This document shows positions 8,433-42,145 of a DNA stretch of 64,000 nt, one piece after another. The notes below the pieces were generated by a model. That model had not been told where the DNA came from. It was given only the letters and a program-made list of their open reading frames with translations, and did not search any database. Source of the stretch: Eutreptiella sp. 'Long Island Sound 2002' (Eukaryota; Protista; Euglenida). The first letter of the stretch is position 1. Every line of letters starts with the position of its first letter. The stretch spans positions 108,686,001 to 108,750,000 of the forward strand of contig OZ038378.1 of assembly GCA_964036045.1 (NCBI GenBank), read 5' to 3'. The position numbers were made by a program, and so were the translations under genes.

Positions 8433-8522
8433 TATGCCACCCCCCACGTGCACGGCGATCTCGTCTCCCGCACGGCGCCATGATGCCCCCACACGACTGC
8501 GCCTGCCCCCCCCCCCCCGCCA

Positions 8523-15070: not shown

Positions 15071-15109
15071 GCCCGGGGGTGTCCCTCTCGCTTTTGCGAG
15101 GGGCGTCTG

Positions 15110-16340: not shown

Positions 16341-16344
16341 GCAA

Positions 16345-16655: not shown

Positions 16656-16948
16656 GCAAATTGGCCAAGCAGGGCTGGACCCAGCCTTGCACCATCTCTT
16701 CTAATTCCAAAGAGGTCTAACCATTACAAACAAGTCCTTCTGTCCGTATTGTTAGTGCTGAGCCAGCAGGGGCCGCTTAATTCTGGTTTCAAGAGAAAAT
16801 TGTCAGAGCTGGTTCCCCAGCGTACTGTGTTGGAGGAGCAGAGAGAGAGTGACACGATGCGAAACGTTCGGAGAAGATTGGGGAGCATGCAGTGATGTGC
16901 GAGGCCTCACGCAAACAGCGTGCAACAACAGGTTCTTACAGCACCTCT

Positions 16949-16970
16949 CTTGCGCGAGGCCTCGCGCAAG
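16949..16970. promoter_or_regulatory. Perfect 22-bp palindrome CTTGCGCGAGGCCTCGCGCAAG, upstream of gene A, paired with a degenerate copy 55 bp upstream
   Basis: Sequence read directly; regulatory function is inferred. Confidence 0.5.
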
Positions 16971-17462
16971 GTTGTTAGTAAAAAAAAAGTTGCAGTACCT
17001 CTCAGTTTGGCATTCCGAACAATACTGTACCCATTTTCCCTAAAACCGCCTCATATCTTGATTCTGCTGTTTGTTTTACACCTTTTTTATTGCTTCGTTT
17101 CTTGCAAAACAGGCCTTCTTCTTATGGCAGAATGGCGAGTCCAGCCAACAAAACAGGTGAGGAACGGGAGTATATCAGCTATGACGCTGAAGAAGAGGAA
17201 TCGGAAACTGGAACACCGAAGAAGGGGCGGAAGAAGAAGGAAAAACCAGATCTTGGCCTGACGATGCGTAGAGACATCGAGGACTTCCTTCAGATAGATG
17301 GGAAGCAAGCTCAGACTGAGCTGAACAAGATGAGAATCGACCAGGAGAGGGCGAAAGGACAGATTAGACGAAAAGATCCAAAATCACTGCTGAACCGTAT
17401 AGAGTCAATTGAAGCAGAACCAGCAACAGGCCCCATGCAGGTCGTTCTCTTGGAAGACAACA

Positions 17463-17535
17463 GTATGTTTCCAACTGAGTGTTCGTCATTCTCATTGCGC
17501 GAGGCCTCGCACATGCACCTCTCCTTCATTCTCAG
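17463..17535 (+). other. Gene A intron 1 (73 nt, phase 1), contains palindrome
   Basis: GTATGT...TTCTCAG; removal restores alignment with the other subfamily. Confidence 0.75.
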
Positions 17536-17895
17536 ATGGCGATCATTGGTGTGTATCTGGACAGCACAGCGTGAAAGCAGCAGTACTGAAGTTTCGGAAA
17601 AAGCGACGGACGGCATGTCTACATTTGCAGAAGTTGCATACCACATGCATGGCCGATTTTCTGAGACTAGATACACCGTGGGCCTTCCGTGCAAAACTGG
17701 GGGGCCCAAGGATGCACACCGGACTTTGAACGGTTACCACTGTGGGAGGCGGAGAATAACCTTAATCCCTGTGACAAAGATCAGCGACGGCAAGATATAC
17801 CTGACACATATAACAATCTCAAGATTGCCATTACAGATGCTGTGCAGATGAGTGCCCTTTTTCCAACCGCTTAGCTGAAGCAGCAGTGTCAATTT

Positions 17896-17965
17896 GTATG
17901 TTCATTTAGCGTCAATTCGACTCTGCCCGTTGTGCGAGCCCCGCACATGACCTTGTTCTTTGCAG
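17896..17965 (+). other. Gene A intron 2 (70 nt, phase 0), degenerate palindrome
   Basis: GTATGT...CTTTGCAG; same position as 26797-26868. Confidence 0.75.
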
Positions 17966-18263
17966 GGCAAAACGTATAAATTGTGCAAGGACTTCATGCC
18001 ATTTGCGGTTTATGCTGGTCCGGATGCTGTGAAAGGTTTGTAACGGTTGCATAAGAAAGGAGAAAGAGTGTCGAAGAACGCGCTAAAGAAGCTGGAGGGT
18101 ATCATCTTTCCGGAGTTCTAAATCAAAGTAGCAGCCGAGATGCAGGACGAACGAACGACCCTCCAGTCGTTGCAGAAATCCATTGACACCATCATCATCA
18201 AACACTGGGTCATGATGCACCTGGACCACCCACAAAACATCCAGTACGCTCGACCTGCAAAAG

Positions 18264-18337
18264 GTGTGTATAACTGACAAGGCCTGGGTTGTGGTTCCAC
18301 ACGGCTGTGTAACTCCTTCACCTTTTGTGTTTCGTAG
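18264..18337 (+). other. Gene A intron 3 (74 nt, phase 1)
   Basis: GTGTGT...TTCGTAG; same position as 26420-26492. Confidence 0.7.
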
Positions 18338-18996
18338 CCAAAGACAAGCGCACCCGCGCAGAGGTTGCAGCACTCGGGAAGCCTGCCTTGAAAGTGAGTT
18401 CTGCTACATGGGGCTATTGGCGGGTACCTGAAGGCAAGGGTTGCGGTCCATGGCCGGTGTGGAAGTCAATGTTGCGCAAATCACTGTGGCGGGAGGCAGA
18501 GAAAGCTAAGCCCGTTAGCCCGCAAATCATAAATGTCCGAAGACGCCTCGGCACAGAGGTCGCCAAGACCCGTGTGGTCCCCGCAGGATCCAATGGTCAC
18601 AAATCAGATTATCACAGTTAGGGCAGCCCAAATTGCAACTCTGGTGAAGGAACCCCCGAAGCGGTTCTTGGAGATCGACAAGACGCTGATTATCATCAAG
18701 GGCGACATATTTGAACATCTTGCCCCCAAGGCCAAGTCCCCGACCTCGTTGTATGAAGAAATGGCGCGTGCCGACACACTCATCTGCGGATCTCAAACTG
18801 TCGTTGACAATATGTACGAAGTTCTGGACAGGAAGACTCGGTGGCGCCTCAATGATGATTTCACCGCACCACGCATTGGGAACATGTTGCGTATTCCATC
18901 TTTAGTTGGCCAACCAAAGACAAGCCAGCCGGCGATCCTACTTTGTTCAACGTTGGCTGATTGCTGATTGCGTCGCTTGATAGCTGGAGCAGAAAG

Positions 18997-19063
18997 GTAT
19001 GATGTCATTGTCGAGTCCTCTCTTTGCGCGAGGCCTCGCGCAATAATAGTTCTCTCTTCGCAG
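18997..19063 (+). other. Gene A intron 4 (67 nt, phase 0), perfect 20-bp palindrome at 19024-19043
   Basis: GTATGA...TTCGCAG; same position as 25629-25714. Confidence 0.75.
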
Positions 19064-19789
19064 ATTCTGAATTATCTGACGCTCGGCCCCACCCAAGTAC
19101 AGGAGGTGGCAAACACAGAATTTTGCGGGCCGCTTCTAATAGCGCATATCATGTGGTATTTGGATACTCACCTGCATCACCTGAAGTGGAGGCCGGGCTC
19201 CACGGCTGCTTTTGTGTTCATCAATCATCGACCAGACCTGGCGTGGAGATTGCGTCCATCGAGCCTGATTCTCGCATGTACCTTCTTGTTGTGTCCACTG
19301 ACAGTGCCGCTGATTGGGTCAACAGAGTGCCAGAGTCAGCTAAACCACGTCTTGACACAAGAGGCAAAGCTGGACGAGTCTGGTGATTGGGATCAGCAAG
19401 CGAACTGGACAAACCGTGGTATTACCCTTTTGGTCCGGATGAGGAGTACAGTTCGATGCGTGCGAGCTGAAGGAGGAAGAGATCCTTCAGAAGTGTCAAG
19501 CTGCAGCTGCACAGGCCCCTGCAGCAAAGTGGAAGTTAACTGGGGAGGAACCTACCCCAAGGGAGAAGACGACTGCTTCTAAGCCCCAGGGAGCGAAATT
19601 GGTAAGCGGTGAAGATACTGACGAGAGCGATGCAGATTAGGAAGAGGACATTGAAGAAGAAGAGGAGGAGGAACCGCAAGTCTCCCAAAGCAAGACAGCA
19701 AAGAAACCGGCGGTGAAACCAGGGTCCGAGAAGCGCCGGGCTCCATTTAAACAGCCAGCTGGGGGGGGTATGTGCCCAGGCTGGGAGAG

Positions 19790-21340
19790 CCATGGCTTAC
19801 GGGGGCGGCGGGGGTTCGTCTTCTGCTCTGGTTGCTACGTGCTGGTACAGCTTGGTGGCGCGAGGGGTAGTGGCCCGCTTCGGGAAGGCCGCAGTCATCT
19901 TATGGGCGGGAGTCCTGCGGTGCACTGGGGGGGGGGGGAGGGGGGGGTGCGGCAGAGTATCATACACCGTGGTGTGCTTCAACTGCTCGTTCCCGGCTGC
20001 TTCCGAAGAATCCCGCGGGCCTTTTGGCCCGGAGCGGCGTCAGGGGCCTGATGATTATGAGTGGTGAGGGGTGGCGGCCTGGGCCAATCCTTCGCCAACT
20101 AGGGGCGGCATTTCCGGGCGGTGTGCGTGAGGGGTCCGAGGAAGCTGGGGGGTTAGTGGGTCTCGGGTCAAAAGGGGCCCGCGTTGCTGAGCCGACCTGA
20201 AGGTCTTGCCCCGCCAGCAACTTCCACAGCGACCCGGAGGTACACCCCTCGGTTTGTCTACTGCTGCTCCGGCCCACCATTGCCTGGGCCGCGTATCGCC
20301 GGCGCGCTGGCCAGGGTCCGGTGTTGTGATCCAGGGGCAGCGCCTCTTTCACGCACGTCCCGACGCTCAGAGAGCTGGGGGGGGCATGTGCTCAGGTTCG
20401 GGGGGTCAAAGCTTGCGGGGGGGAGCACCGCGGGTCACAGGCTCGCTCAAGCTCAGTTGATGGTACGCCCCCCCCCCTCCCTGTGTTCGGCGTCAGGGAT
20501 CCAGGGGGCGGTTCATGGGGTGCTAGGCGATTGCCGCTGGTAGACGCCCGGCTGGCCATCTCCAATCCCCGTGGGAAGCGCCGTCACCCGTGCTTCTGCT
20601 TTTGCAGTGGCTGCGGCTGCAGTGGCGGCGGGTTCCTCGGGCGGTAGCACCAGTGCATGAGGGCGGCATGCAGGGCATGAGCAGCGAGACATTGGCCTCC
20701 GCGTCGGTGACGCGGAGCACCCGCCCCTGCTCTGGGAAGGCCGGCCAGCCCGGCTCCCGGTCTGGCCATCCCCCCTAGTCGGGGGCTGAATGACCCTTAT
20801 GTGGTCCTGCTGGGCCAGGGAACCCCCTGGGGGCACCTCATCGTTCCCCTCGTTCGCCGGAGGAGCACGGCGTCGAACAGCCGGGGACCTTGCCTCCCTT
20901 TGGGGAAGGCGGCCCTGGGCGCCGGGGACCCTTTCGGCAGATACCGCTTGGGGGGGCTCACGTGGGTGTGGCCGGGCTTGGTGTGGGCGCGGTACTTGGC
21001 TTCCTCTCTGCTCTCCTTCGCCGCCATAGCGGCACCTTGCAGCCGGGCCGGTGAAGCGTCTTGGGCCCTTGTAGGGCCGGTCCCACGCTGCGCCTTGACT
21101 GGCTTGGGTGTCAGCAGCGGTCCCACGTGGCCGGTCTGGCGGCGCGTCTGGGGCAGGTAGCGGCCTGGGTTGCAGGAGAGGCTTCCTCACCCAGCGCCTG
21201 CTCAGGGGCCGGCGGCTCAGGGTAGCTTGGGGCCACTTGGGGCTACCCGGTTGGCGGCGCAACCGGAACCGCGGGCTCCGCCAGCCTCCGCCCCTCCCGC
21301 TCTGCGGGGGTTTCCCCTGCGCATCTGGGGGAGACGAGGT
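19790..21340. other. Very GC-rich segment of unknown origin that truncates gene A and abuts dispersed repeat copy 2
   Basis: Abrupt compositional shift; no recognisable protein motif in the overlapping ORFs. Confidence 0.35.
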
Positions 21341-22383
21341 GAAGCGCTCTCCCTCTTCCGGCTGCCCGTCTTTCCAGGCGGCTGGCTGGGTGTTGGTGTG
21401 GGTATCTTGCTCGTGATGCCCGTGTGCCTCTGTGGGTGCGTTGTTGTGCTGTGTGTGCGCAGTGACGTGTTACGGTCTGCCCTTTCCTCTACTCCCCTTT
21501 CCCTGTCTCCAAGTATCCGTCCTTGGGGCGGGCAGCTCGGTGTGGGTGTGGGTGCCGTGCCCGTGGTGCCCCCCTCCTCTTGTATCCGGCGCGTGCCGCC
21601 CTTGTGCTCCCGCTACTCTATTGACGTGGCCCACCCTTCAATCTTCGTTCTTGCGGTTTGCCATTACTCTGTTCTGTCTCTACTGTGGTCTACTCGCTGC
21701 ATTTGGCGGGTGCCCAAGAGTAGGCGCTGTTTCCCCCTTCCTCTATCCCTGCTGGCTGGGCCGGCCCTCCTCCCTTGTGGGCATTTTCCCCTGTCCCAGT
21801 CTTGTGTGGCTATGTCTTTCGGTTTTCCTCCGCTCCTCCCAGGATCTGTAGGACAACATGGGGAGGCAAGGTGTGGGCCGATGCGGGCGTGGTGTTCGAG
21901 TGCGACTTGCAAGGTGTGCTATCCATTGCGCGGTCGGAAGTTGTTACGATTATTCGTGATTACGTGGCGGCGGCAGCGGCGTCCCATCCAACTTCTCTGA
22001 CCTGCGGAGAGGGTGTGAGGGGGTGGGGAGTTGTGGGTTTCCTGTTGGTGCGTCAGTAGGGCGGTGCGGTTGCTGCCCGTCGTTTGTGGCACTTTTTCTG
22101 TGGTTTGTACTCGCCTGCTTGCCGTTCCGCCATACGGTGACAGTTATGCGCTGCATCGCATACCTCTTTGCCTTGTGTGTGTGTGTGTTGGCATACCCGG
22201 TGTGGTCTGGCGCAAACTTCTTGTTCTCCTCTCTACTCCCTCTGCTTGACAGTGTACCCTGTCGTGGGGAGTAGTAAGGAGGCGTGTTCTCGATGACGGT
22301 GGTTGGCCGTGCTGTCCTCCGCGGTACTGGCGACCTAAAGAGTGTGCAAGTAGGTGGGGAGGGAAGGCGGCTTGGCATGTTGC
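21340..22383. repeat. Dispersed repeat copy 2
   Basis: Direct-orientation homolog of 15110-16340. Confidence 0.75.
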
Positions 22384-23499: not shown

Positions 23500-25090
23500 G
23501 CCAGCATTAATCGCAGTCATCGGCTACCTTAGCCCACGCAAACTGCACCCCCTTTTGGAAGGAGCGGACGCAAAAAGTTGCTACCGAAGAAGCTATTTTT
23601 TTCGGAAATTTACAACACCTATGAATCAGACAACACCAAACAAATGATTTTCCACCCACTTTGCTGGTTTCTTCAACATTTTGTTTGGGAAAATAAATGT
23701 TTATTTTAATGGATTTGAAGGTTGGTATTGCCAATATTGTTGTATTTGTGTTTCAAAATCCCACATGCACGTGCATTTTCAAAAGCTCAATTTCCAAATT
23801 GTAATTTTGTGGAGCACCAGTAGTAACACAGGTTTTCCTGCGAGAATGAATTGCTTTTTTCTGTCACTCAGTGCGCCAGGGCTCGCGCACTGAAGGCCGT
23901 GGAATCAATTGTGGACAGAAGGCAACAAACACAGGACAGAAAATGCAGTACATGCAAACACTGAACCAAAAGCTCCCTAATGATGTACAAGGCCTTAAGG
24001 GCATATAAATGCATTGGCATCGAAGGCGCTTGTGCGAGACCTTGCGCACACATGACTGCAAAAAGGGGAAAAACATCTGCCTTAAGTTTGACTTACTTCT
24101 TCTTCTGTGGTGCCACCTTGGCCAACCTGGCATTCAGGTTCCTTGTCACTGAACCTCCCCCACCCGGGGAGGCAACGATACCACAGGATAACTGACCACC
24201 AGAACGCGATGGTGGCTTGAATTATGCAGTTCCACTCGCAGCAGTCTTCGCTTTCTTCTTTGGCTACTCCATACCCGCATCATCGGGACTTGCATCAAAG
24301 TGAGAGGCCGGCGCCCGCTTTCGCTGCTATTGGGTCTCCAGTACTTGATCCAGATTCTCATCTTCCTGCTCCTCGTCGCCAACCTCATCGTCTGTTTCTT
24401 CCGCCTTGTCCGATTCCTTTCCTTCTTCTTTTGCATGCTTCTTGCTACTTGAGGGGTTCCTTTGCCTGCTGCAGTACCCCAGGTTGGTGCATCTTGGGCA
24501 GTCTCCTTCAGCTTGGGCAGGATAGGTTGAGGCTTAGGCGCAGTAAACTCACTGTCGTCAACGGGGGCCTCAAACACAATCTGTTCTTGGGTGGCTTCTG
24601 CAGCATGCACCCTCTGGTGCCCTTCGTGACCTCCATTGCTGTCCAAAACCCAGAGTGGAATGCCACGCAAAAGCCACTCTTCTTGAGTATCCCAAGTTGC
24701 AGCTGTCACTCCCTGCCTCGTCTGATCGGCTTCCAACATGTACGGCAGGATGATGGCATCCTGCACAGCACCTCCTACAGCATAGTAGTAATATCCTTGG
24801 TGTGAGAGGCATCAGCGCAGCAATAGTTTTTTCCATAACTATCAGTTTTCGGTCTGATATTATGGTTGAACCAGGGCGTAGCAGGCCATTCTGTAGGTAA
24901 GTTAGAATAGGCTGCAACACCCGAAAAGTGTGTGTAACAACAAACTTGTGGGCGTGCCAAACATCGGAAACTACAGGTAGGTACCGCAGGTAGGCACGCA
25001 TGTTCCATCGTTGGATCTTTGCCCCATACAACAGTTTTAGTATCCTGTAGTTTGGGTTTTCATCGGCCACCAGCGGTACAGGTTGGTGCA
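23500..25090 (-). mobile_element. Internally deleted derivative of the two-gene element (partial; gene B middle fused to gene A tail)
   Basis: About 80% similar to 30700-32210; same deletion junction at ~24781-24798; palindromes at 23868 and 24031. Confidence 0.7.
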
Positions 25091-27596
25091 ACCTGGGCAG
25101 TCCTCTTCAGCTTCGGCAGGGTACATTGAGGCTTAAGCGCAGTAAGCTCACTGTCGTCAACGGGGGCCTCAAACACAATCTGTTCTTGGGCGGCTTCTGC
25201 AGCATGCACCTTCTGGTGCCCTTTGCGACCTTGGTCGCTATCAAAAACCTAGAGTGGAATGCCACGCAATGGCCACTCTTCTTGAGTATCCCAAGGTGCA
25301 CCTGTCACTCCCCTCTCCACCTGATCGTCTTGCAACATGTACCGCATGACGATGGCATGCTACAGAGCACCTCCAACGGCATTGCCAAGGTCCTTTTGCT
25401 TGATCGCTGATACAGCCAGAAACGCCACCTTAGTCCTCCCTCTGAAATTGCAATACTTGCGGCCATGGCCGGCATCTCATCCACAACAACCACTGCATCA
25501 ATGTTCCCACAATCAACCAGATACTTGTCAAGGTACAACAGCACGTGACTCAGAGGCATGAAACCACCGGGGTTCTTGATCTGCATCTCTTCGAAATGTC
25601 CAGCGAAGTACGTCAGATAGTTCTGCAACTGCAAATGCGACGAAGAAAGATCAGTAACTGAGACACCAGTGCGCAGGGCCTCGTGCACTCGACAGCGTCA
25701 AAAACAGCATATACCTGCTTATCCCAGCGGCTTGTTGTTCCAATCCACATAGTGTGCTCGTCAAACTAATACATGTTGGTTGTGACGGAACCCGCCATCC
25801 AGGAGTATACCGGCATCCGGGGATGATAGAAAGGCACTGTAGTTGGATCCTACTCCTTCTCAATACGCCACAGCCTCTGCATGTCTCGGCCAATACGGTA
25901 CACCACATCAGTCTCGCCATAGAAAATCACATCCTCACCCAACATCACCACATCTGACAACCACTTAGGAACGAATTCTGCAGAGTTGTATTCCACGAAG
26001 AGGTCAGCCTTGACAACTGTCGACGGGTACCGCAAGTCCCGGAAACGGGCTCGTGGTGGCTCTTCAATATCCTCAATACGGCATGGTGGCGAGCTGCACT
26101 CTGCCCCCTGGTCGTCCTGCTTGGAGACATTGATCACTTCGCCAGTGCTCAACTGTGTCTATGTCGTTTGCGCCGATGCTGGTTCCTCAGTCTTCCTCCG
26201 CAGTTGCTTCCGCATGCACGGACAGGGTCCGCGGTGACGGAGGTGCTCCCCTGTCCCCAGTCCGCCACAGGGGTGCACCAGTCAACGTTTTTCATTCTGG
26301 CCACGGCGACCAGTACTTCCAACTTTTTGCATTTTCCCGATAGCCCGAGTTTGCCAGACCAATCTTCAGTTGCGACGTGCCCGGTGCTGCGGCTTCTGCT
26401 CAAATCTTCGCAGCGGCAGCTGTGTACATGTGAAAAAATGGCGGATGCGTTCGCGAGCCCTCGCGCACCGAACCTGCGAAACCGCCGCATACCTGCGGTT
26501 TGCTTGGCGAAATCCTTATTGTGGCAGTGGTCAACGTGGAGAGTAACCGATTGTTCCGTAATCAACGCATCAATCTGGGGCTGGGTATTGTGTGTGGTCG
26601 CATCTTTCAGTTTATGATGCGCGCAAACACTTTGCAATAAACTTTGTAGATGCTGCCCCTCCAGCTTCTTGAAGGCATTCCTCGCGACATCCTCTTTCTT
26701 GCTCCTACTCTCGAGGTTCTTCATGTCTCTCACCGTGTCGTGGCCGCAGTAGTATGCCAGGGAGAAGACGCCCCTGCAGTGCTTGAATGCTGCCTCCTGC
26801 AAAGAAACAGGTGCAATATGGTGCGTGAGACCTCGCGCACTGCGACTGTGTGGCGCACCAACACATACTGTGTACCCTGGTTCTTCCAAATGCTCGGGGG
26901 CAAAAAACGCGGAATCGACCGCAGCCTGGACTACAGAAGTTTCGGACCCTTCGAAATCTTGTGGTTCCTTTTCCCGCTTCTGGTCCTGAGAAAAGCAACT
27001 TGTCTGGTGACTGGGACAGCGCATTCGACGTCACAGACTGGCTGCTAGCTTGCTGTAATCCTGCAACCTTGGCCTAGATGCTCCAAGGGGACTCGTACTA
27101 GAGATTGTCAACATAGCAGTATTCCTGCGGGTCCTCCAGCTCTCTGCTTTCTGCTAGCCGCACGTTATTAATCGGCCTGCATGTCTCTGTCCCGTCTTGC
27201 CCATGTAAAATGCAAAGTGAGCCATCTGCAAGGCAAATCATGTACCGCAGCACAGCAGGGAGGCGAAATGTTGTCGACCTTCCTTACGCAAAAATATAGA
27301 GCGAGTCATACCACTGCCCTCCCAAGCGGTTACGGGCAACGGTCCCGGTGGCGGCAACGCTTGGTATCCCGCCACTTTCTTGACAACCTCGTCTTGGTCG
27401 ATGGCTTGGATCTGTCCTCGTTCCCTTGTGTTGTTGCCCTTCAAATCAGCCCATTTTATCTTCACTGCCTTTCCATCATCTCCGGTATTGGCTTCTTTTC
27501 CCCTTCTTCTTCCGCCCTTTCTTCAGTGTGTTCTCTTGGTCGTCCCTGGTGATCTGCGTCTGGTGGCCTCCTTTCTGGCAACCCTGGTTGACTCAT
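25090..27596 (-). pseudogene. Gene A, subfamily 2 (introns 27226-27311, 26797-26868, 26420-26492, 25629-25714)
   Basis: GT-AG introns of 86, 72, 73 and 86 nt at positions matching the + copy; spliced protein aligns with 17132-19790. Three of the four introns carry the palindrome. Confidence 0.75.
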
Positions 27597-30700: not shown

Positions 30701-30799
30701 GGGGAGGACACAAAAAACGGCAACCGAAGGAACTATTTTTTTTGGACATTTACAGCACACATGATTCAGATATCACCAAAAAAACCGTTTTTTACGCAA

Positions 30800-33750
30800 C
30801 TTGCTGCTTTTCTTAAGATTTTGTTTACGAAAATAAATTATTGTTTTGATTGATTTGAAGGGTGCGTATTACCAATGTTGTTGTTTTGTATTTCAAAATC
30901 CCACCAGCACGTGGCTTTTCAGAAGCTCTTTTTCAAAAATGACATTCTTTGGAATTCCAGTTGAACCAAAGTTTGTCCTGCGAAATAAATTGCTTTTTTC
31001 TGCGCCTCAGTGCGCGAGGCCTCGCGCACTCAAGGTCGTGGAGACAAATGTGTACAAAAGGCAAAGAAATCACAACACGAAATACACAACATGCAAACAC
31101 TGAAAGAAAGGCTCGACAAAAATGTACAAGCCCCTAAGGGCATATAAATGCATTCCCGTCGAAGGCGAGTGCGCGAGACCTCGCGCAACCATGACTGCAA
31201 AAAGAGAAAAACACCTGGGTTAATCATGACCTACTTCTTCTTCGGTCCTGCAAATTTAGCCAACCTGGAATTAAGGCTCCTTGCCACTGAACGTTCCCCA
31301 CTTGGCGAGGCAATGGTACCAGGGGATGGCTGAGCACCAGAACGCGATGGCGGCTTGAACTCTGCACTAGCACTTGCAGCAGTCTTCGCTTTCTTCTCTG
31401 GCTGGTCCTTACCCGAATCATCGGGACTTGCATCAAAGTGAGAGGCGGGCGCCCGCTTCCGCTTCTGCTGTGTCTCCAGTACTTGCTCAGGATCATCTTC
31501 TTCCCCCTCGTCGCCATCGTGGTTGTCTGATTCTCCCGTCTTGTCCGATTTCTTTCTCTTTTCTTTTGCCTGCTTCTTGCTACTCGAGGGAATTCCTCTC
31601 TGGCTGCAGTACCCCGAGTCGGTACAACTTTGGCCGCCTTCTTCAGCTTGGGCAGGGTAGGTGCGTTCTTAGGCGCAGTAGACTCACTCTCGTCAACGGG
31701 GACCTCCGACACGATCGGTTCTTGGGCGGCTTCTGCAGCATTCACCTTCTGGTGCCCTACGTGTACAAAACCTGTACAAAACCCAGGGTGGAATGCCACG
31801 CAAAAGAGACTCTTCTTGAGTATCCAAAGTTGCAGCTGTCACTCCCTGCTCCAGCTGATCATCTTCCAACACGTACCGCAGGATGATGGCATGCTGCAGA
31901 GCACCTTCAACGGCATAGTAGTAGTATCCTTGTTGTGGGGGGTATCAGCGCAGCAATAATTTTTTTCATGACCAACAGTTTTGGGTATGATAGTACGGTT
32001 GAACCAGGGCGTAGCAGGCTGTTCCGTAGGTAAGCTAGAATAGGCTGGAACACCCAAAAAGTGTGTGTAACAACAAACTTGTGGGTGTGTCAAACACCGT
32101 AAAGTACAGGTACGTACCGCAGGTAGGCACGCATGTTCCATCGTTGGATATTTGCCGCATTCAACAGCTTCAGTATCCTCTAGTGTCGGCTCTCATCAAC
32201 CAACAGCGGTAAAACCCTGTTTGTCTCCTGTGCTGCGTCCTTCACAAACTGCAACAAGTTTAACAGACCGACACGGCAGGTTACCATTTCTTTCCACAGG
32301 GCAAACGGGCCTCACATCGGTGCCTGCACTGTCGTTGTTTGCCTGTTCACATCCAACGGTGCTCTCACATTTCCGGTATCTGGTACACAACCATCCGCAT
32401 CTTCCATGTCAGGCAGAGTCTGGGTGATTCTCCTTTCGCGTTGTTGCAGAGCCCGTGCGACTGTGGTTTTTCGTGCTGCGAGGTCCTCAATGGCTGGGTG
32501 AAATACTGCAATTACAGTACAGTTTTTCTATTGGTCACTTGCGTTTGGGTGTGGCCTGTATTGTGCCCGGTCCCAGTTGTCAATCCACAGCACGCAGCAC
32601 GATGCAAGCACCAGTGTCCACGTTGCTTTAAGTGCTGCTGCAGCCTGTTCGTTCGCTGTATTTGCGGCGGCGTCTGCTTGCCCAAGTCGTACCTTCGTTT
32701 ATCTTTCTCTTCGTGTTAGGTACCCTGTTGTGTTTCCCGGTTTTTTTCTGTTTGGTACTGCCCGTTGACGCATCAACAGATACAGGTTCGAGGCGTCTTG
32801 TCGCAAAATGCGCACCCAGCGCTTGTCCTTCTGCCTTTTAGCTGCGGCCTGACTGTGTCGGGTTCTTTTTTTGAACCTGAGTCGCTGTGCAAATGTTAAC
32901 GCCAGTTGTGCCGCCTGGTCCTTTCGTTTCAGTCCGTTCCACAAGTCGTCAGCTGTTTGATATGATGGTTCTGCAGCGCATGCCACTCTCGGTGATGCTG
33001 CCCCTTTGCTTATTTCTGCAATCATGCGATGCGTTACGGATTTTCTGGGGCGAAGCGGCATTCTGCATTTTCTGTGTTAAATTGAATTGAGGCGTACATT
33101 TTAATTAGCGTTTCGCATAGCATTCTTTATAAACAGTGTGGCCTTTTTCATGTCGTCATTACTAGTGCGCACACAGCCGTCGCAATATGTATTCGGTGTC
33201 TGCGTGCGCTCTGTTGCCAGTAACCGAAAACCGTTTTCCCAACCACAATCTCCTGTTCGATTTCCTTCTTTCAATCCAGTCAAAAAAAACCCTATCCTTT
33301 GGGCAGCGAAGGCTACAACCGCCCCTAAAACTGGACACGTCTGCCATTGAGTGGCTGTTGGGAAACAAAATCATTCCCCTCACCGCCTGACGGATATGAC
33401 GAAGGTGACCGATGTATAATCGACAGTCACAAGTGGTAGGCTTGAAAGGGAATGTAAATGCCGGCGCAGCCTGACCAGCCCGCTTTTTCATTTCCTTGTG
33501 TGATTTGAGTGCGGGAGGGATCACGCACTGATTGTTTCCGGTGGACAATGTTGTGTACCGTGTCATACGTGACCAACATTGTGTCTACACACACGTACAT
33601 CGCAAAAATCAAATGTACTTGTCAGTATAGTACTGCCACTGCAGTCTTACGCGTCTTATCCACCCTGTAAACCATTACAGAACGTGATCAGAGTGCGCGA
33701 GGCCTCGCGCACCCCGGATGCCTAAATTTGTATGTCATTTTTAAGTTAGA
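30800..33750 (-). mobile_element. Internally deleted derivative carrying the gene B N-terminal part fused to the gene A tail
   Basis: Gene B motifs (WIDNWDR, LLVDE, YPKL) run into the gene A tail at ~31917-31931; palindromes at 31009, 31170 and 33693. Confidence 0.7.
31009..31030. promoter_or_regulatory. Perfect 22-bp palindrome AGTGCGCGAGGCCTCGCGCACT (duplicate at 38778-38799)
   Basis: Sequence read directly; function is inferred. Confidence 0.5.
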
Positions 33751-33829
33751 GTGTATGTGTTTCACCGAACATGGGAAGTCTGGCCGTCATACACTTTCCA
33801 TGCACCTCCGTCAATACAATGTGAGTACA

Positions 33830-35374
33830 GGCTCGTGGTGGCTCTTCAATATCCCCAATACGGCATGGTGGCGAGCTGCACTCTGCCCCCTGGTCGTCCT
33901 GCTTGGAGACATTGATCACTTCGCCAGTGCTCAACTGTGTCTATGTCGTTTGCGCCGATGCTGGTTCCTCAGTCTTCCTCCGCAGTTGCTTCCGCACGGA
34001 CAGGGTCCGCGGTGACGGAGGTGCTCCCCTGTCCCCAGTCCGCCACAGGGGTGCACCAGTCAACGTTTTTCATTCTGGCCACAGCGACCAGTACTTCCAA
34101 CTTTTTGCATTTTCCCGATAGCCCGAGTTTGCCAGACCAATCTTCAGTTGCGACGTGCCCGGTGCTGCGGCTTCTGCTCAAATCTTCGCAGCGGCAGCTG
34201 TGTACATGTGAAAAAATGGCGGATGCGTTCGCGAGCCCTCGCGCACTGAACCTGCAAAACCGCCGCATACCTGCGGTTTGCTTGGCGAAATCCTTATTGT
34301 GGCAGTGGTCAACGTGGAGAGTAACCGATTGTTCCGTAGTCAACGCATCAATCTGGGGCTGGGTATTGTGTGTGGTCGCATCTTTCAGTGTATGATGCGC
34401 GCAAACACTTTGCAATAAACTTTGTAGATGCTGCCCCTCCAGCTTCTTGAAGGCATTCCTCGCGACATCCTCTTTCTTGCTCCTACTCTCGAGGTTCTTC
34501 ATGTCTCTCACCGTGTCGTGGCCGCAGTAGTATGCCAGGGAGAAGACGCCCCTGCAGTGCTTGAATGCTGCCTCCTGCAAAGAAACAGGTGCAATATGGT
34601 GCGCGAGACCTCGCGCACTGCGACTGTGTGGCGCACCAACACATACTGTGTACCCTGGTTCTTCCAACTGCTCGGGGGCAAAAAACGCGGAATCGACCGC
34701 AGCCTGGACTACAGAAGTTTCGGACCGTTCGAATTCTTGTGGTTCCTTTTCCCGCTTCTGGTCCTGAGAAAAGCAACTTGTCTAGTGACTGGGACAGCGC
34801 ATTCGACGTCACAGACTGGCTGCTAGCTTGCTGTAATCCTGCAACCTTGGCCTAGATGCTCCAAGGGGACTCGTACTTGAGAATGTCAACATAGCAGTAT
34901 TCCTGCGGGTCCTCCAGCTCTCTGCTTTCTGCTAGCCGCACGTTATGAATCGGCCTGCATGTCTCTGTCCCGTCTTGCCCATGTAAAAGGCAAAGTGAGC
35001 CATCTGCAAGGCAAATCATGTACCGCAGCACAGCAGGGAGGCGAAATGTTGTCGACCTTCCTTATGCAAAAATATAGAGCGAGTCATACCACTGCCCTCC
35101 CAAGCGGTTACGGGCAACGGTCCCGGTGGCGGCAACGCTTGGTATCCCGCCATATTCTTGACAACCTCGTCTTGGTCGATGGCTTGGATCTGTCCTCGTT
35201 CCCTTGTGTTGTTGCCCTTCAAATCAGCCCATTTTATCTTCACTGCCTTTCCATCATCTCCGGTATTGGCTTCTTTTCCCCTTCTTCTTCCGCCCTTTCT
35301 TCAGTGTGTTCTCTTGGTCGTCCCTGGTGATCTGCGTCTGGTGGCCTCCTTTCTGGCAACCCTGGTTGACTCAT
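33830..35374 (-). pseudogene. Gene A subfamily 2, duplicated copy, 3'-truncated by the duplication junction
   Basis: Near-identical to 26048-27596. Confidence 0.72.
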
Positions 35375-35880
35375 GGTGAGAACAAATACCTGAAGACAGA
35401 AAATGACATGATACAGAACACGTTCATTGGGCTCTGAATTCAGTCGAAACGCCACATTGCCACTTGTCCCCGCAATTCTGTCAAACGACCGTATTTCCTG
35501 CAACCAATTTCACGGGACTTCGCGACCTACTCAGTGCGCGAGGTTCCGCGCCCTCACACCGGATTACAGACCTGTTTCTCGTGTACTCTAGTGCACGCGG
35601 CCTTGCGCACTGCAGGAATCAGGTACCGCACTCGCTGGCGCACGTTGCGCGGCGCATGTGCCTATCTGTCGGCATCGAAATCTGTTCTCCTCCCATCAAC
35701 ATCCTCCATTTTCTGTTTAAGTTGGTTTGTGGGCTTTGTCTTTTGGTCGATGAGGGCATCCAGCACGCTGTGACGGAGTAGCCCGTAATGGTCGTAACCG
35801 AGGGGTGGATTGGTGAGGGTGGAACTCTCAGTAACCTCGCTGGCCACAAAATTTGCAACAGTACTGATGCGCTTTGGATC

Positions 35881-38470
35881 TCATTCCACGTAGGCCAAAA
35901 GTCTTGTTAGTCGTTGTTGCATCCTGTGTACCAGGTTCTTGGGAATGTTTTGTACATCCACGCGTTTACTACCTGGACAAACCTGTAGTAACAAGTAGTT
36001 GTTTTTCACCTCCTCAACAGTAACAGACCCGGTGTTTTTCGCCTTATCACGCACCAGCTTGCTCAAAAACCCCTCACCAAACTCCTCTTAGTGTGCCTGG
36101 CCGGGCAGGTCCTGGGGCCACATGCTGCTGTACAGCAATGTGCACATAATGGTCCGTTCATACTTCAGAACGTTGTCGCACGGTCCGCGTCCCAACCTCC
36201 GCAACAGACAGAAACTCAACTGCAACACCTCCTGGGCCCGCGACCCTGTACTGTTATTTCCCCCCGCCCAGTTGCACTCTCCTACCAGGTGACCCAAGTA
36301 GAATAGCAATGGGCACCATTCCAGCATCAACCACAGCACTGTGTTTGCCGCTGCTGTCCTGTTGGCATCCGATGTATCACAACCACTAATTGCAGTTGCC
36401 GCCTGTGCCTTGCGATGGTACGGGGTAGGATCCTTGGGCTTCCAAGCAGCAGCGCAAAAATAGTGTTTTCCATAACTATCAATTTTGGGTACAATAGTAT
36501 GGTGGTACCAGGGCGTAGCAGGCCCTTCTGTAGGAACGTTAGAATAGGCCAAAACACCAGAAAGGTGTGTGTAACAACAAACCTGTAGGCGTGCCATACA
36601 CAAGAAACTACAGGTACATAACGCAGGTTGGCATGCATGTTCCATCGTTGGGTCTTTGCGCCATACAACAGTTTTAGTATCCTGTAGTGTATGTTTCCGT
36701 CAACCAACAGCTGCAAGACCCTGTTTTTTTCTTCTGCATGAAGGTTGCCCCCCGCAAGCATTACTCAAAGCGGCCTAACCACGAGCAAGAGCGTTCATGG
36801 CCAGACAAAGTACAAAGCAAGAAAACATATACACAACAAATTCTTCTGTTCTTGTCTCCACGTGGTCACTCACCCGGATCATCTGGGTGCAGTGCACTGC
36901 CCTGCTTGGCACCAGAGGCCAGATGGTTACCTGAACACCCCGCTGGGTGGTGGACCTGAGTACATTGCTGAGAAAAGAGAAAAAATAGAAAATGAAAAAT
37001 TCAACATATATGAAGAGTAGGGAGTTGGCCCAGTCATGGTTGCCAAGAACTGCAGTAAGGGGGAGGGGGGGCGCTGCAGTTGACAGTGAGGAGATGAACG
37101 CAGAGGAGAACGGAAAATAACTGGCGGGGGGTACCTTTCCCCGAATCTCGGTGCGGGGCAGAGACCCCCTGGTCGCTAGTGGAGCTTAGCCTCCTTTCAC
37201 ACTGAAGTCTTAGGCGACTGTGACCGGTGAAGCTATTGCTGTGGGTGCTCGAGGTCTGTTGAGCTGGACAGTGTTGGTTTTAGTAACTGTGTGGTGTGTT
37301 GCACTGCAGCGTTTTCTTTGGGTGTTTGTTAAGAGGGGGCGGATGATTTATTTTTGGGGAATGAGAGTCGAGTGCGGTGGTGAGCTGATGTGATGTGGAT
37401 GGAAACAGGATTTTTCCAGGGTTTGTGAGTTGTGTCTGGTTGTAAGGTGTGTAGGTCTGGTATGGGGCTAGACCCTGTTTGTCCGTTCTTTTTAGGCATG
37501 GCGGACCCCCGCCCAAGACTACACAAATCTGCTCAACTGCGAGTTTCCTCGAAGGACAGCCGCTATCTACAGCAAAACCATACAGAATTGAGACACAAGG
37601 TGTCAGAGACACTTTTGGGGAAAACCATAGGCTTAGGCCTGTTTGTCTGTTGTGCTGTGTCTTGCGCAAACTGCAACAGGTTTAACAGCCCGATACCGCA
37701 GGTTACCTTTTCCTTCGACAGGGCAAACAGGGGCCACATAATAGCCTGCACGGCTGTTGTATCCCTCCTAACTTCCAACAGTGCCCTCACATTTCCGGTA
37801 TTTGGTACACAATCATCCACATATCCCATGTCACGAACAGTCTGGGTGATTCCCCTCTCCTGCTGTTGTGGAGCCCGTGCCACTGTCGTTATGTGTGGTG
37901 CCAGGTACTGAACGGTACGGTGGTCTGTCCAGTACGTCCGTCTCTGCCCAGCTGAAGTACTGCCATTGCAGTACATTTTTGCGACCTGTCACTTTTGTCT
38001 GGGTGTGTCGTGTATTGTGCCCGGTAACAGTTGTCCATCCGCAGCATGCAACACGATGCAACCACCTATGTCCACATTCCCTTGAATGCGGCTGGTGCCT
38101 GTTCGTCCACCATTTTTGCGGCGGCGTCTGCTTGCGCGGGTCGTACTTTTGTTCGTCTTTCTCTTTGTGTTAGGTGCTTTTTTGTGTTTCCCGGTTTTCT
38201 CCTGTTTGGTACTGCCCGTCATCAACAGGTACAGGTTCCAGGCGTCTTGTCGCAAAATGCGCACCCAGCGCTTGTCCTCCTGCGTTTTAGCTGCGGATAA
38301 ACTGTGTCGCGTCCTTTTGTTGAACCTTAGTCGCTGTGCAAATGTTGACACCAGTTGTGCCGCCAGGTTGTTTGGTTCCAGTCCGTTCCACAAGTCATCA
38401 GCTGTATGGTATGCTGGTTCTGCAGCACATGCCTCTCGAAGCCCACACAAACTGCGGCCCCCTTTAGGAA
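35881..38470 (-). pseudogene. Gene B, duplicated copy
   Basis: Near-identical to 28104-30700. Confidence 0.55.
36727..37637 (-). mobile_element. Duplicate of the retroposon-like insertion
   Basis: TSD CCTGTTT at 36720-36726 and 37638-37644. Confidence 0.8.
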
Positions 38471-38579
38471 GGGGAGGACACAAAAACGGCAACCAAAAGA
38501 ACTATTTTATTTGGACATTTACAGCACACATGATTCAGATATCACCAAAAAAACCGTTTTTTACGCAACTTGCTGCTTT

Positions 38580-41500
38580 TCTTAGGATTTTGTTTACCAA
38601 AATAAATTATTGTTTTGATTGATTTGAAGGGTGCGTATTACCAATGTTGTTGTTTTGTATTTCAAAATCCCACCAGCACGTGGCTTTTCAGAAGCTCATT
38701 TTCAAAAATGACATTCTTTGGAATTCCAGTTGAACCAAAGTTTGTCCTCCGAAATAAATTGCTTTTTTCTGCGCCTCAGTGCGCGAGGCCTCGCGCACTC
38801 AAGGTCGTGGAGACAAATGTGTACATGAGGCAAAGAAATCACAACACGAAATACACAACATGCAAACACTGAAAGAAAAGCTCGGCAAAAATGTACAAGC
38901 CCCTAAGGGCATATAAATGCATTCCCGTCGAAGGCGAGTGCGCGAGACCTCTCGCAAACATGACTGCAAAAAGAGAAAAACACCTGGGTTAATCGTGACC
39001 TACTTCTTCTTCGGTCCTGCAAATTTAGCCAACCTGGAATTTAGGCTTCTTGCCACTGAACGTTCTCCAGTTGGCGAGGCAATGGTACCAGGGGATGGCT
39101 GAGCACCAGAACGCGATGGCGGCTTGAACTCTGCACTAGCACTTGCAGCAGTCTTCGCTTTCTTCTCTGGCTGGTCCTTACCCGAATCATCGGGACTTGC
39201 ATCAAAGTGAGAGGCGGGCGCCCGCTTCCGCTTCTGCTGTGTCTCCAGTACTTGCTCGGGATCATCTTCCTCCCCCTCGTCGCCATCGTGGTTGTCTGAT
39301 TCTCCCGTCTTGTCCGATTTCTTTCTCTTCTCTTTCGCCTGCTTCTTGCTACTCGAGAAAATTCCTCTCTGGCTGCAGTACCCCGAGTCGGTACAACTTT
39401 GGCCGTCTTCTTCAGCTTGGGCAGGGTAGGTGCGTTCTTAGGCGCAGTAGACTCACTCTCGTCAGCGGGGACCTCCGACACGATCGGTTCTTGGGCGGCT
39501 TCTGCAGCATACACCTTCTGGTGCCCTACGTGTACAAAACCTGTACAAAACCCAGGGTGGAATGCCACGCAAAAGAGACTCTTCTTGAGTATCCAAAGTT
39601 GCAGCTGTCACTCCCTGCTCCAGCTGATCATCTTTCAACACGTACCGCAGGATGATGGCATGCTGCAGAGCACCTTCAACGGCATAGTAGTAGTATCCTT
39701 GGTGTGGGGGGTATCAGCGCAGCAATATTTTTTTCCATGACCAACAGTTTTGGGTATGATAGTACGGTTGAACCAGGGCGTAGCAGGCCATTCCGTAGGT
39801 AAGCTAGAATAGGCTGGAACACCCAAAAAGTGTGTGTAACAACAAACTTGTGGGCGTGTCAAACACCGTAAAGTACAGGTATGTACCGCAGGTAGGCACG
39901 CATGTTCCATCGTTGGATATTTGCCGCATTCAACAGCTTCAGTATCCTCTAGTGTCGGCTTTCATCAACCAACAGCGGTAAAACCCTGTTTGTCTCCTGT
40001 GCTGCGTCCCTCACAAACTGCAACAAGTTTAACAGACCGACACGGCAGGTTACCATTTCTTTCCACAGGGCAAACTGGGCCTCACATCGGTGCCTGCACT
40101 GTCGTTGTTTGCCTGTTCACATCCAACGGTGCTATCACTTTTCCGGTATCTGGTACACAACCATCCGCATCTCCCATGTCAGGCAGAGTCTGGGTGATTC
40201 TCCTTTCGCGTTGTTGCAGAGCCCGTGCGACTGTGGTTTTTCGTGCTGCGAGGTCCTCAATGGCTGGGTGAAATACTGCAATTACAGTACAGTTTTTCTA
40301 TTGGTCACTTGCGTTTGGGTGTGGCCTGTATTGTGCCCGGTCCCAGTTGTCAATCCACAGCACGCAGCACGATGCAAGCACCAGTGTTCACGTTGCTTTA
40401 AGTGCTGCTGCAGCCTGTTTGTTCGCTGTATTTGCGGCGGCGTCTGCTTGCCCAAGTCGTACCTTCGTTTATCTTTCTGTTCGTACCCTGTTGTGTTTCC
40501 CGGTTTTCTTCTGTTTGGTACTGCCTGTTGACGCATCAACAGATACAGGTTCGAGGCGTCTTGTCGCACAATGCGCACCCAGCGCTTGTCCTTCGGCTTT
40601 TTAGCTGCGGCCTGACTGTGTCGGGTTCTTTTATTGAACCTGAGTCGCTGTGCAAATGTTAACGCCAGTTGCGCCGCCTGGTCCTTTCGTTTCAGTCCGT
40701 TCCACAAGTCGTCAGCTGTTTGATATGATGGTTCTGCAGCGCATCCCACCCTCGGTGATGCTGCCCCTTTGCTTATTTCTGCAATCATGCGATGCATTAC
40801 GGATTTTCTGGGGCGAAGCGGCATTCTGGATTTTCTGTGTTAAATTGAATTGAGGCGTACATTTTAATTAGCGTTTCGCATAGCATTCTTTATAAACAGT
40901 GTGGCCTTTTCCTGTCGTCATTACTAGTGCGCACACAGCCGTCGCAATATGTATTTGGTGTCTGCGTGCGCTCCGTTGCCAGTAACCGAAAACCGTTTTC
41001 CCAACCACAATCTCCTGTTCGGTTTCCTTCTTTCAATCCAGTCAAAAAAAACCCCATCCTTTGGGCAGCGAAGGCTACAGCCGCCCTTAAAACTGGACAC
41101 GTCTGCCATTGAGTGGCTGTTGGGGAAAAAAATCATTCCCCTCACCCCCTGACGGATATGACGAAGGTGACCGATGTATGATCGACAGTCACAAGTGGTA
41201 GGCTTGAAAGGGAATGTAAATGCCGGCGCAGCCTGACCTGCCCGCTTTTTCATTTCCTTGTGTGATTTGAGTGCGGGAGGGATCGCGCACTGATTGTTTC
41301 CGGTGGACAATGTTGTGTACCGTGTCATACGTGACCAACACCGTGTCTACACACACGTACATCGCAAAAATCAAATGTACTTGTCAGTATTGTACTGCCA
41401 CTGCAGTCTTACGCGTCTTATCCACCCCGTAAACCATTACAGAACGTGATCAGAGTGCGCGAGGCCTCGCGCACCCCGGATGCCTAAATTTGTATGTTAT

Positions 41501-41590
41501 TTTTAAGTTACAGTGTATGTGTTCCACCGAACATGGGAAGTCTGGCCGTCATACACTTTCCATGCACCTCCCTCAATACAATGTGAGTAC
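38580..41590 (-). mobile_element. Internally deleted derivative, duplicated copy
   Basis: Near-identical to 30800-33828; junction at ~39684-39700. Confidence 0.7.
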
Positions 41591-41599
41591 TAATAACGT

Positions 41600-42145
41600 G
41601 TAAAAGCTGTTTACTTCTCAAACCTCTGGTGCTTAGGGATTTTATGTTTAGTAGTAAGCTGTACCTGGGATATCTTGAGTGAGCGTGGCCTCGCGCACTC
41701 AGAGCAACGTAAAATATAAAAAACGTCCCATTCAGGAATAATTTTTTTCACAATGCCCAAGAACACGGTCATCAAATATACAAAAAAAATAGTTTTTTGG
41801 CACTGTTGTGAAGCAGTCCTTCTCTACACGTTTGATGCGCAAAAAAAAGGTGCAGTTTGCATGAGCTAGGTATCTTAATGCGGCAGCTCCCTGGTTTACC
41901 TCTGCAATCATTCCATGTGTTACTGATTTTTCTGCGCGAAGCGGCATTCTGTGTGATTCTGCGTTAAATCAAATTTGCGCGTATATTTTGAGTCACATTT
42001 CACACAGCATAATTTAAAAACAGCGTGTTTGAAATCATCTGTCATTTGCCTATCGCCATTACTAGTGCGCTCGCTGCCGTCGCAATTTGTAGTTGCTGTC
42101 TGCGTGGGCTCCGTCGCCAGTAACCGAAAGCCGTTTTCCCAACCA
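41600..42145 (-). mobile_element. Further, more diverged fragment of the two-gene element's 5' region
   Basis: 41900-42145 matches 33000-33245; degenerate palindrome at 41677-41700. Confidence 0.6.

Follow-up and report, generated by a model that had tools for sequence, protein, structure and literature searches.

The stretch of DNA examined here, hereafter the window, comprises 64,000 nucleotides of the Eutreptiella sp. 'Long Island Sound 2002' assembly GCA_964036045.1 (contig OZ038378.1, positions 108,686,001 to 108,750,000 of the forward strand). It contains remnants of a mobile element with two genes, designated gene A and gene B, and with many copies of the short palindrome GCGCGAG-NN-CTCGCGC (GCGCGAGNNCTCGCGC). 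Nine exact matches to this motif were found in the window, against 0.01 expected from dinucleotide-preserving shuffles, and when up to three mismatches were allowed the number of matches rose to 25, where the shuffles give 1.67. All matches with no more than two mismatches are confined to positions 16897-41696, and the two outlying ones, at 13794 and 62192 with three mismatches each, are at chance level. An earlier note, made from the sequence of the window, had listed 23 copies, and the motif or a decayed version of it was recovered at all 23 positions, with strong decay (three or more changes) at three of them (17932, 27811 and 35589); two further decayed sites, at 33511 and 41273, were added to the list. 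The centre of the motif varies as described there (GC, AC, GT, CC or GG), and its extension is real, with perfect palindromes of 18-24 bp at many sites. The copies are indeed present, but they are not independent of each other, about half of them being owed to a 7.78-kb duplication with 97.5% identity. Most departures from the motif in the window copies are C-to-T or G-to-A changes at CpG, and this decay, together with a CpG observed/expected ratio of 0.6-0.9 across the window, suggests CpG methylation in this genome.

The nature of the element was deduced from other copies. L003 and L005, two intact copies of what we call subfamily 1, come from the ENA metagenome assembly ERZ25074135, in which the window corresponds to about 1,059,010-1,123,009 of the 1.75-Mb contig ctg10794, L004 served as the reference for subfamily 2, and seven lineages were read in all. 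L003 5552-11946 and L005 9113-15505 are 97% identical over 6.4 kb; both copies have perfect 29-bp terminal inverted repeats (TIRs) at their two ends, starting CTTAGGCGGCTCAAG, and these two independent insertions are flanked by 5-bp target-site duplications (TSDs), CAAGA in L003 and TCACA in L005. These features identify the element as a TIR (class II, cut-and-paste) DNA transposon; its existence had already been claimed in the earlier note, and its nature is added here. The TIR of subfamily 2 is the 23-bp sequence CTTAGCCCACGCAAACTGCACCC, which occurs in the window at 23528, 30667, 38437 and 41848, and L007, one of the distant relatives described below, has a related TIR. The two subfamilies share 46% identity in gene B, and their non-coding DNA cannot be aligned. 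At least 264 relatives of a gene A exon were found at the 90% cluster level, all of them on Mb-size contigs of ENA assemblies, and gene A is therefore part of a high-copy repeat. The host is a eukaryote with GT-AG introns. The L003 copy lies antisense within a host gene whose open reading frames (ORFs) match Beta-Casp and CPSF73-100_C, about 60 bp from an exon, and apparently inside an intron of this CPSF73-like gene. No relative of gene B was found in IMG/VR, so that a viral origin is unsupported. Literature searches for the motif, GC-rich intron palindromes in transposons and superfamilies with 5-bp TSDs gave no account of the family or its palindromes, and the family is apparently undescribed so far.

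Both intact subfamily-1 copies carry ten palindromes, arranged in a 3+2+3+2 plan. A trio upstream of gene B is located 200-490 bp inward of the 5' TIR; a pair with a distance of 55 bp follows directly past the gene B stop; gene A, which lies downstream of gene B, has one site each in introns 1, 2 and 4; and a final pair is found 365-473 bp inside the 3' TIR. Subfamily 2, as read from L004 plus the window copies, follows the same plan, its gene A sites occupying introns 2, 3 and 4, and every one of the 25 window sites is consistent with it. Only five of the ten sites are within about 500 bp of an end, the remainder being 2.9-5 kb inside. Three of the ten sites per element are in demonstrable gene A introns, possibly together with one spacer site, and the rest are subterminal or between the genes. 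The placement of the motif in non-coding DNA, and its retention in two subfamilies although their introns are otherwise unalignable, were thus correctly described before.

The motif is specific to the element. In agreement with the earlier note, which had seen none outside it, no copy was found in about 85 kb of DNA outside the element, made up of the remainder of the window and the sequences around three other copies, the region of the CPSF73-like host gene included. A scan of JGI metagenomes for TGCGCGAGNNCTCGCGCA gave isolated single matches only, located on high-GC (median 68%) bacterial contigs without gene B, and Rfam and tRNA scans of the window gave no match. Flanking TSDs around the palindromes were not found, the flanks being inverted and not direct repeats. 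In subfamily 1 the core is flanked by TT..AA, with T:A at ±2 in six of ten sites, and in subfamily 2 by AGT..ACT, with G:C at ±2 in seven and A:T at ±3 in six of eight sites. Pairing beyond the core amounts to a mean of 2.1-3.25 extra pairs, against about 0.33 expected, and the flanks vary from site to site while remaining palindromic (CTTT..AAAG, CATT..AATG, GAGT..ACTC).

Both genes named in the earlier note proved to be real. Gene B is a single-exon ORF of 661 codons in L003. It has no Pfam match, and no PDB sequence match was obtained with either the single sequence or a 50-sequence profile; a profile search returned 1514 representatives at E ≤0.001, and all of those sampled were unnamed metagenome ORFs. 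An AlphaFold (AF2) model built from the 50-sequence alignment has a predicted local distance difference test score (pLDDT) of 89.5 and a predicted template modelling score (pTM) of 0.83. Its best Foldseek match is the P-element transposase 6p5a (E 6.8e-4, probability 1.0), followed by Hermes of the hAT superfamily (probability 0.97-0.99), Transib (0.47) and RAG1, all with low template modelling (TM) scores of 0.2-0.4. Residues D158, D295, E372 and W330-H331 are invariant in the alignment. By its modelled fold, gene B is interpreted as a DDE/RNase-H-fold transposase of an unclassified family. Searches of Pfam and PDB gave no sequence-level match that would place it in the P, hAT or Transib superfamilies. 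TSDs are 8 bp long for hAT and P, and 5 bp long for Transib; the 5-bp TSD of the present element agrees with Transib alone, yet Transib is the weakest of the three structural matches. The element differs from all three in lacking a THAP or BED zinc finger, and its TIR starts with CTTAG.

Gene A has five exons and four introns. When four GT-AG introns of 73, 71, 74 and 67 nt are removed, the L003 gene is predicted to give an open reading frame of 790 codons, whereas the unspliced reading contains 16 stops. The intron positions are common to both subfamilies. Similarity between the plus-strand gene at 16.4-19.7 kb of the window and its minus-strand counterpart at 28.3-25.1 kb is confined to the protein level, in collinear blocks with 25-41% identity. 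No Pfam, NCBIfam or PDB match was obtained for gene A, and neither Myb nor MADF nor any other domain was recognised. A ParB/DndB-like domain, prompted by a conserved G-Q-H motif, was also considered, and it was not supported by Pfam, NCBIfam or a PDB profile search. The statement that six of eight non-duplicate gene A introns contain the palindrome agrees with our independent exon model, which gives three of four introns per subfamily. In subfamily 1 the palindrome is located centrally, 29-36 nt from a donor of the GTATGT type and 19-23 nt from the acceptor, and in subfamily 2 it is 26-39 nt from the donor and 27-43 nt from the acceptor. For intron 4, the RNA structure predicted consists solely of the palindrome hairpin, with a stem of 6-8 bp, a 4-nt loop and -12.2 kcal/mol. 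Intron 3 of subfamily 1 has a collapsed palindrome remnant, and intron 1 of subfamily 2 lacks the family palindrome. This last intron (L004 14159-14233, window ~27200-27250) contains a 10-bp palindrome, TTCGATCGAA, of the TTCG..CGAA type seen in the relatives L006 and L128, and the same L004 stretch is also open in frame.

Possible splice signals were also observed between the genes. The gene B stop overlaps a possible GT donor (L003 8420-8470; L004 11975-12020), and a conserved CAG|GT donor is found between the two spacer palindromes in both subfamilies, the second spacer site following 20 nt past it. These signals hint, from sequence, at a leader intron of gene A or at an alternatively spliced B-A fusion.

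The comparison was extended to five distant gene B relatives from other metagenomes, with about 22-31% identity. Each of them has its own palindrome of 16-18 bp, present at 8-23 sites, with a shuffle expectation of about 0 wherever shuffles were run. These palindromes are TGCGCGC-N4-GCGCGCA in L007 (13 sites), TTCGTAAC-N-GTTACGAA in L128 (23 sites), AACGGGATCGATCCCGTT in L129 (9 sites), TTCGCTCCATGGAGCGAA in L006 (11 sites) and TCCGCGAA-NN-TTCGCGGA in L130 (about 8 sites). A sixth relative, L131, is a 3-kb contig consisting nearly entirely of ORF, and it was uninformative. In all lineages a CG is present at half-site positions 3-4, counted from outside. Six of the eight arm positions vary from lineage to lineage, and each change in one arm is matched by its complement in the other. 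Within a lineage one sequence is found at all sites, with no drift.

The sites of the relatives are also found in the same kinds of places, namely upstream of gene B, directly downstream of it, within the introns of gene A and close to the ends. The intronic ones include three sites in intron 2 of L128, a double site in intron 4 of L007 and two sites in intron 1 of L006; intron 1 with palindromes is present in subfamily 1 and L006, and this intron is absent from L007 and L128. In L128 and L129, gene A (minus strand, located by tblastn) and gene B (plus strand) are oppositely oriented, and arrays of 4-5 sites within a few hundred bp are located between the genes, directly upstream of gene B, in DNA that is probably at least partly untranscribed. 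In L128 and L006, groups of 4-5 copies are arrayed in tandem at spacings of 24-29 bp and 69 bp. The asymmetric 4-nt centre of L007 was found in both orientations, as CTGT and as ACAG. Some sites of the relatives are even in frame within the transposase ORF: four in L007 (1239, 1854, 1881 and 1920), translated L/M-R-A-Q-A-R-N, and one each in L128 (6117), L006 (2893) and L130 (4005). One of the L007 in-frame sites coincides with that of L128 in the gene B alignment, at about residue 200, with a different sequence. Because two lineages have different palindromes at the same position, the protein sequence at this place follows that of the DNA site.

The element copies in the window itself are all dead; the counts of coding breaks given for them are approximate. 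The subfamily-1 fragment (16338-19759, plus strand) is decayed and truncated at both ends, has no TIRs, and comprises the terminal part of gene B together with the spacer and gene A, with 76% DNA identity to L003 7868-11338. Its gene B remnant (16338-16895, plus strand) corresponds to the last ~28% of the gene, is collinear with the C-terminus of the 661-residue L003 product and has one in-frame stop. The gene A remnant (17132-19759, plus strand) retains five exons and four short introns, with about seven frameshifting indels, two in-frame indels and five stops. Of its palindromes, the first spacer site (16897-16912, orthologous to L003 8427) has two mismatches, and the second (16952-16967) is exact, with the conserved GT donor about 20 nt upstream. 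The site in gene A intron 1 (17497-17512, L003 9026) has one mismatch, that in intron 2 (17932-17947, L003 9463) is strongly decayed, and that in intron 4 (19026-19041) is exact and central in the 67-nt intron 18997-19063.

The subfamily-2 copies form a rearranged cluster at 23528-41870 on the minus strand, resolved by blastn against L004 and by self-comparison into a long copy and internally deleted ones, with a nested insertion and the 7.78-kb duplication. The ~80%-identical repeats of this region have diverged neutrally by codon periodicity and could be taken for non-coding repeats; the comparison with L004 showed them to be decayed subfamily-2 copies. A 3' TIR is found at 23528-23550 (minus strand, 23/23 identical to the L004 5' TIR), followed by a 3' subterminal pair of palindromes with one (23873-23888) and two (24032-24047) mismatches. 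A local duplication of 304 bp (24480-24783 and 25079-25382, 86% identical) was observed where the long copy meets part of an internally deleted one.

The gene A remnant of the long copy (25082-27552, minus strand) has 76% identity to L004 13874-16377 and a protein match to the subfamily-1 gene A. Its palindromes are located in intron 4 (25671-25686, three mismatches, orthologous to L004 15770), intron 3 (26451-26466, one mismatch, L004 14991) and intron 2 (26823-26838, one mismatch, L004 14618). One spacer site (27758-27773, L004 12034) is exact, and the other (27815-27830, L004 11977) is decayed. The gene B remnant (27846-30671, minus strand) has lost its first few codons and contains an insertion of ~0.9 kb, about four frameshifting indels, one in-frame indel and five stops; in each duplicate of this gene B the count is about 4-5 for frameshifting indels and 4-5 for stops. 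A 0.9-kb stretch (28950-29868) is absent from L004, and a 1.6-kb stretch (L004 12255-13874) is absent from the window copy; both of these copy-specific stretches are probably secondary insertions. At 41873-42146 lies one more 5' remnant that belongs to the long copy.

An internally deleted, non-autonomous copy (30667-33828, minus strand) joins sequences corresponding to L004 9198-11138 and 16074-16739; its 3' TIR is at 30667-30689, and its 5' side ends at the duplication boundary. Both sites of its 3' subterminal pair (31012-31027 and 31171-31186) are exact, and of its 5' subterminal trio one site (33511-33526, corresponding to L004 9479) is decayed, with three mismatches, and one (33695-33710, L004 9294) is exact. 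The first unit of the duplication (26045-33828) spans parts of the long copy and of a deleted copy, and the second unit lies at 33827-41590; nine palindromes were duplicated with it. Motif search and self-comparison identified the duplicates of the 26451 site (34229-34244), the 26823 site (34601-34616, exact), the 27758 site (35536-35551, two mismatches) and the 27815 site (35593-35608, decayed). A complete internally deleted copy of 3.4 kb (38437-41870, minus strand) has both TIRs (38437-38459 and 41848-41870) and retains the 5' trio and the 3' pair. It is likely nested in the start of the gene B of the long copy, with a diverged flanking 5-bp duplication in which three of five positions match. 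Its 3' pair consists of an exact site (38781-38796) and one with a single mismatch (38940-38955), and its 5' trio of a decayed site with two mismatches (41273-41288), an exact site (41457-41472) and an outermost site with two mismatches (41681-41696), which maps to L004 9068 and is ~170 bp inside the 5' TIR.

The other repeats of the window are of different kinds. Pfam scans of 20 window ORFs identified only neighbouring retrotransposons and gave nothing for the palindrome element. Two copies of a non-LTR (without long terminal repeats; LINE-like, that is, resembling long interspersed nuclear elements) retrotransposon, at 3129-8432 on the plus strand and 9835-12807 on the minus strand, have endonuclease, reverse transcriptase and RNase H ORFs, and their 3' regions (8522-9686 and 12904-14044) are 89% identical. 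A pol fragment of an LTR retrotransposon (62639-64000, minus strand), with an integrase core and a chromodomain, runs past the end of the window; L004 has related Ty3-like pol ORFs, and 0.8 kb of the window (59592-60389) is 94% identical to L004 2751-3548. Two satellite arrays (47729-49099 and 49848-51272) comprise ~7.5 units each; their periods are 185 and 184 bp, and a duplication of 138 bp is found between them. GC-rich (63-66%) blocks at 14000-16050 and 20000-22290 have a strong T-over-A skew and 203-bp tandem repeats, and the subfamily-1 fragment is enclosed by direct repeats (15117-16051 and 21344-22286) with 79% identity. At 54953-58102 on the minus strand, two long ORFs, with 507 and 517 residues, lie next to each other; they have no Pfam match and may belong to another unclassified element.

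With regard to function, we favour the reading that the palindromes are binding sites for a dimeric DNA-binding protein encoded by the element itself and are hosted in its non-coding DNA, and we give it a probability of roughly 0.55. The earlier note had offered a dimeric-protein site and an RNA hairpin side by side; the anatomy that it described was recovered, and the sequence evidence added here leans towards a DNA-binding site, an RNA hairpin retaining some probability for the intronic sites. Two-fold symmetric recognition by an element-borne factor is suggested because the sites are uniform in each lineage and keep the half-site register with its CG while the other positions are replaced wholesale, and duplex DNA is favoured over RNA because there are sites in probably untranscribed DNA and the centres are orientation-free. 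Candidates for the binder are the gene A product and the N-terminal portion of the gene B transposase. The binder would recognise a half-site of 8-9 bp with the invariant CG, and protein and sites would co-evolve, giving each lineage a private address. Occupied sites may regulate both genes, may help to assemble or mark the element for its transposition machinery, or both. Introns, spacers and subterminal DNA would host the sites because a fixed sequence of 16-22 bp is hard to fit into a coding sequence, and where a relative has a site in gene B the protein sequence would bend to the palindrome.

Several observations weigh against this interpretation. Pfam, NCBIfam and PDB sequence searches recognised no DNA-binding domain in the gene A or gene B protein, and one half of the sites lie internally, an uncommon arrangement for repeats bound by a transposase. 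Flanks that are palindromic and yet vary from site to site are the outcome to be expected of selection for base pairing, and the central position of the intronic sites in introns of ~70 nt, directly before the likely branch point, hints at a role at the RNA level. The 16-bp core shared by two subfamilies of one genome could also be explained by a host factor. Finally, about 10% of the core positions are changed in the dead copies of the window, which is about the neutral expectation, and the constraint that we infer comes solely from comparisons between lineages.

These points lead to three other explanations, each of which we consider unlikely. According to the one that comes closest, the palindromes form RNA hairpins in the pre-mRNA of the element, with a GC stem of 6-8 bp and a 4-nt loop, which are located in short introns and untranslated regions and there act on splicing efficiency, intron retention or the fate of the transcript, possibly through an RNA-binding protein. 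This would account for the three of four gene A introns per subfamily with a central palindrome, next to the likely branch site in subfamily 1, for the fold of intron 4, and for the second spacer site following a conserved donor in both subfamilies. Introns 2, 4 and 1 host the palindromes of L128, L007 and L006, respectively, the arms change between lineages and yet remain complementary, and the flanking extensions are complementary with varied sequences, all of which a hairpin would also explain. A purely structural stem, however, need not be the same at all 8-23 sites of a lineage, nor keep a CG at one position; many sites have a subterminal location or belong to arrays that separate oppositely oriented genes, the AT-rich 8-1-8 sites of L128 would form weak hairpins, and the L007 loops occur in both orientations. 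Splicing is also likely to be independent of the palindrome, because some gene A introns (intron 3 of subfamily 1, apart from its collapsed remnant, and intron 1 of subfamily 2) have none.

Less probable than the hairpins is recognition by a host factor, either a transcription factor or a chromatin protein, for example a CpG-reading one, that would drive expression of the element or shield it from silencing, different hosts then giving different motifs. The identical 16-bp core in two subfamilies of one genome and the differing motifs of relatives from other samples agree with this, as do the CpG-dense sites upstream of both genes and the CpG transitions that make up most mismatches in old copies and suggest that these were methylated. 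On the other hand, the flanking host DNA, including the CPSF73-like gene region, has no site, the specificities of host factors seldom diverge so far, and the conserved half-site register, together with a fast-evolving and family-specific gene A, better suits a partner encoded by the element. We give the lowest probability to a selfish or mechanistic by-product, that is, to tiny self-propagating or conversion-driven inserts around which introns or tolerant protein loops evolved. The in-frame gene B copies of L007, three of which are clustered in a segment absent from the relatives, the tandem arrays of L128 and L006, the presence or absence of gene A intron 1 with its palindromes between lineages, and the identical copies within a lineage are what such copying predicts. 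The dispersal test failed, however, with no copy outside the family in the ~85 kb; the flanks are inverted and without direct repeats, subfamilies with 46% protein identity have retained the number and layout of the sites, and the conserved CG register speaks for recognition rather than drift.

If the palindromes are indeed docking sites of an element-encoded protein, a wider interpretation can be put forward tentatively and with much less confidence. The family may represent a new superfamily-level group of eukaryotic DNA transposons with operator-like self-recognition, in which a dimeric protein, probably the gene A product, would read ~10-20 palindromes over the whole element, co-diversification would give private addresses, and introns would be kept, and perhaps were born, as housing for the sites. 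Private addresses that separate lineages from their relatives may be likened in this respect to plasmid partition and incompatibility systems.

Known systems share some of these features, the nearest in presumed operation being TIR transposons with two proteins and subterminal binding repeats (En/Spm, Ac, PIF/Harbinger). En/Spm-CACTA (TNPA, TNPD) and Ac/Ds are TIR transposons with subterminal protein-binding repeats. The present element resembles them as a class II element with TIRs and an element-private motif repeated inside both ends, some copies as inverted pairs, and it also resembles them in having a second element-encoded protein as the presumed binder and a CpG in the motif, which permits methylation sensitivity. 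In contrast to both, half of the sites are deep inside, between genes, in introns and even in coding sequence, rather than all lying within a few hundred bp of the ends, every site forms a complete 16-22-bp palindrome, and the TSD is 5 bp; Pfam/NCBIfam-type searches of genes A and B found no sequence similarity to the En/Spm or Ac/Ds transposases or accessory proteins. PIF/Harbinger elements are described in a preprint as two-component systems of a DDE transposase and a Myb/MADF-like DNA-binding protein (bioRxiv 10.64898/2026.05.26.728016). Here too there are two genes, of which one encodes a predicted DDE transposase and the other would encode a DNA-binding partner addressing the element, but gene A has no Myb/MADF domain, the TSD is 5 bp and not 3 bp, and the predicted fold is nearest to P, hAT and Transib.

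The dispersed palindromic operators of plasmid ParB-family regulators are exemplified by the KorB operators on RK2 and by parS sites. By analogy, about a dozen copies of a 13-16-bp palindrome over one replicon, a replicon-encoded dimer and a lineage-specific specificity may be compared with the arrangement proposed here, although that system is prokaryotic and a ParB-like domain in gene A is unsupported. Internally symmetrical introns are described for Hypoxylaceae fungi (PMC8469720). These introns and Introner-like elements are similar in being short spliceosomal introns with an internal inverted repeat, but in the present element only the 16-22-bp core is shared, the remainder of the intron is unrelated and the core is also found outside introns. 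The repeated unit is not the whole intron, as it is in Introners, no copies occur in flanking host DNA, and a single transposon family is involved. Rickettsia palindromic elements, bacterial repetitive extragenic palindromic (REP) elements and mitochondrial GC clusters are palindromes dispersed genome-wide. They resemble the present sites in that short palindromes are able to sit in frame in coding genes, as in L007 gene B, and differ in that the present ones are restricted to one mobile element with a conserved layout. Miniature mobile palindromes, such as miniature inverted-repeat transposable elements, REP elements or elements of the Rickettsia type, were also considered for the present motif and rejected, as no dispersed copies in the ~85 kb of flanks and no flanking TSDs were found.

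Public metagenomes contain at least 1514 unannotated representatives of the family at 50% identity, and the lineage-specific palindrome is a practical marker with which its copies, non-autonomous ones included, can be found and classified. The CpG-rich core and its decay by CpG transitions tie the system to DNA methylation. If the sites dock an element-encoded protein, a eukaryotic transposon would address itself along its whole length and not at its ends alone, and the pair of protein and site would diversify into codes that are private to each lineage. The family would then offer a tractable natural system for the study of co-evolving DNA-binding specificity, of the cross-talk between related transposons and of intron retention in transposon genes.

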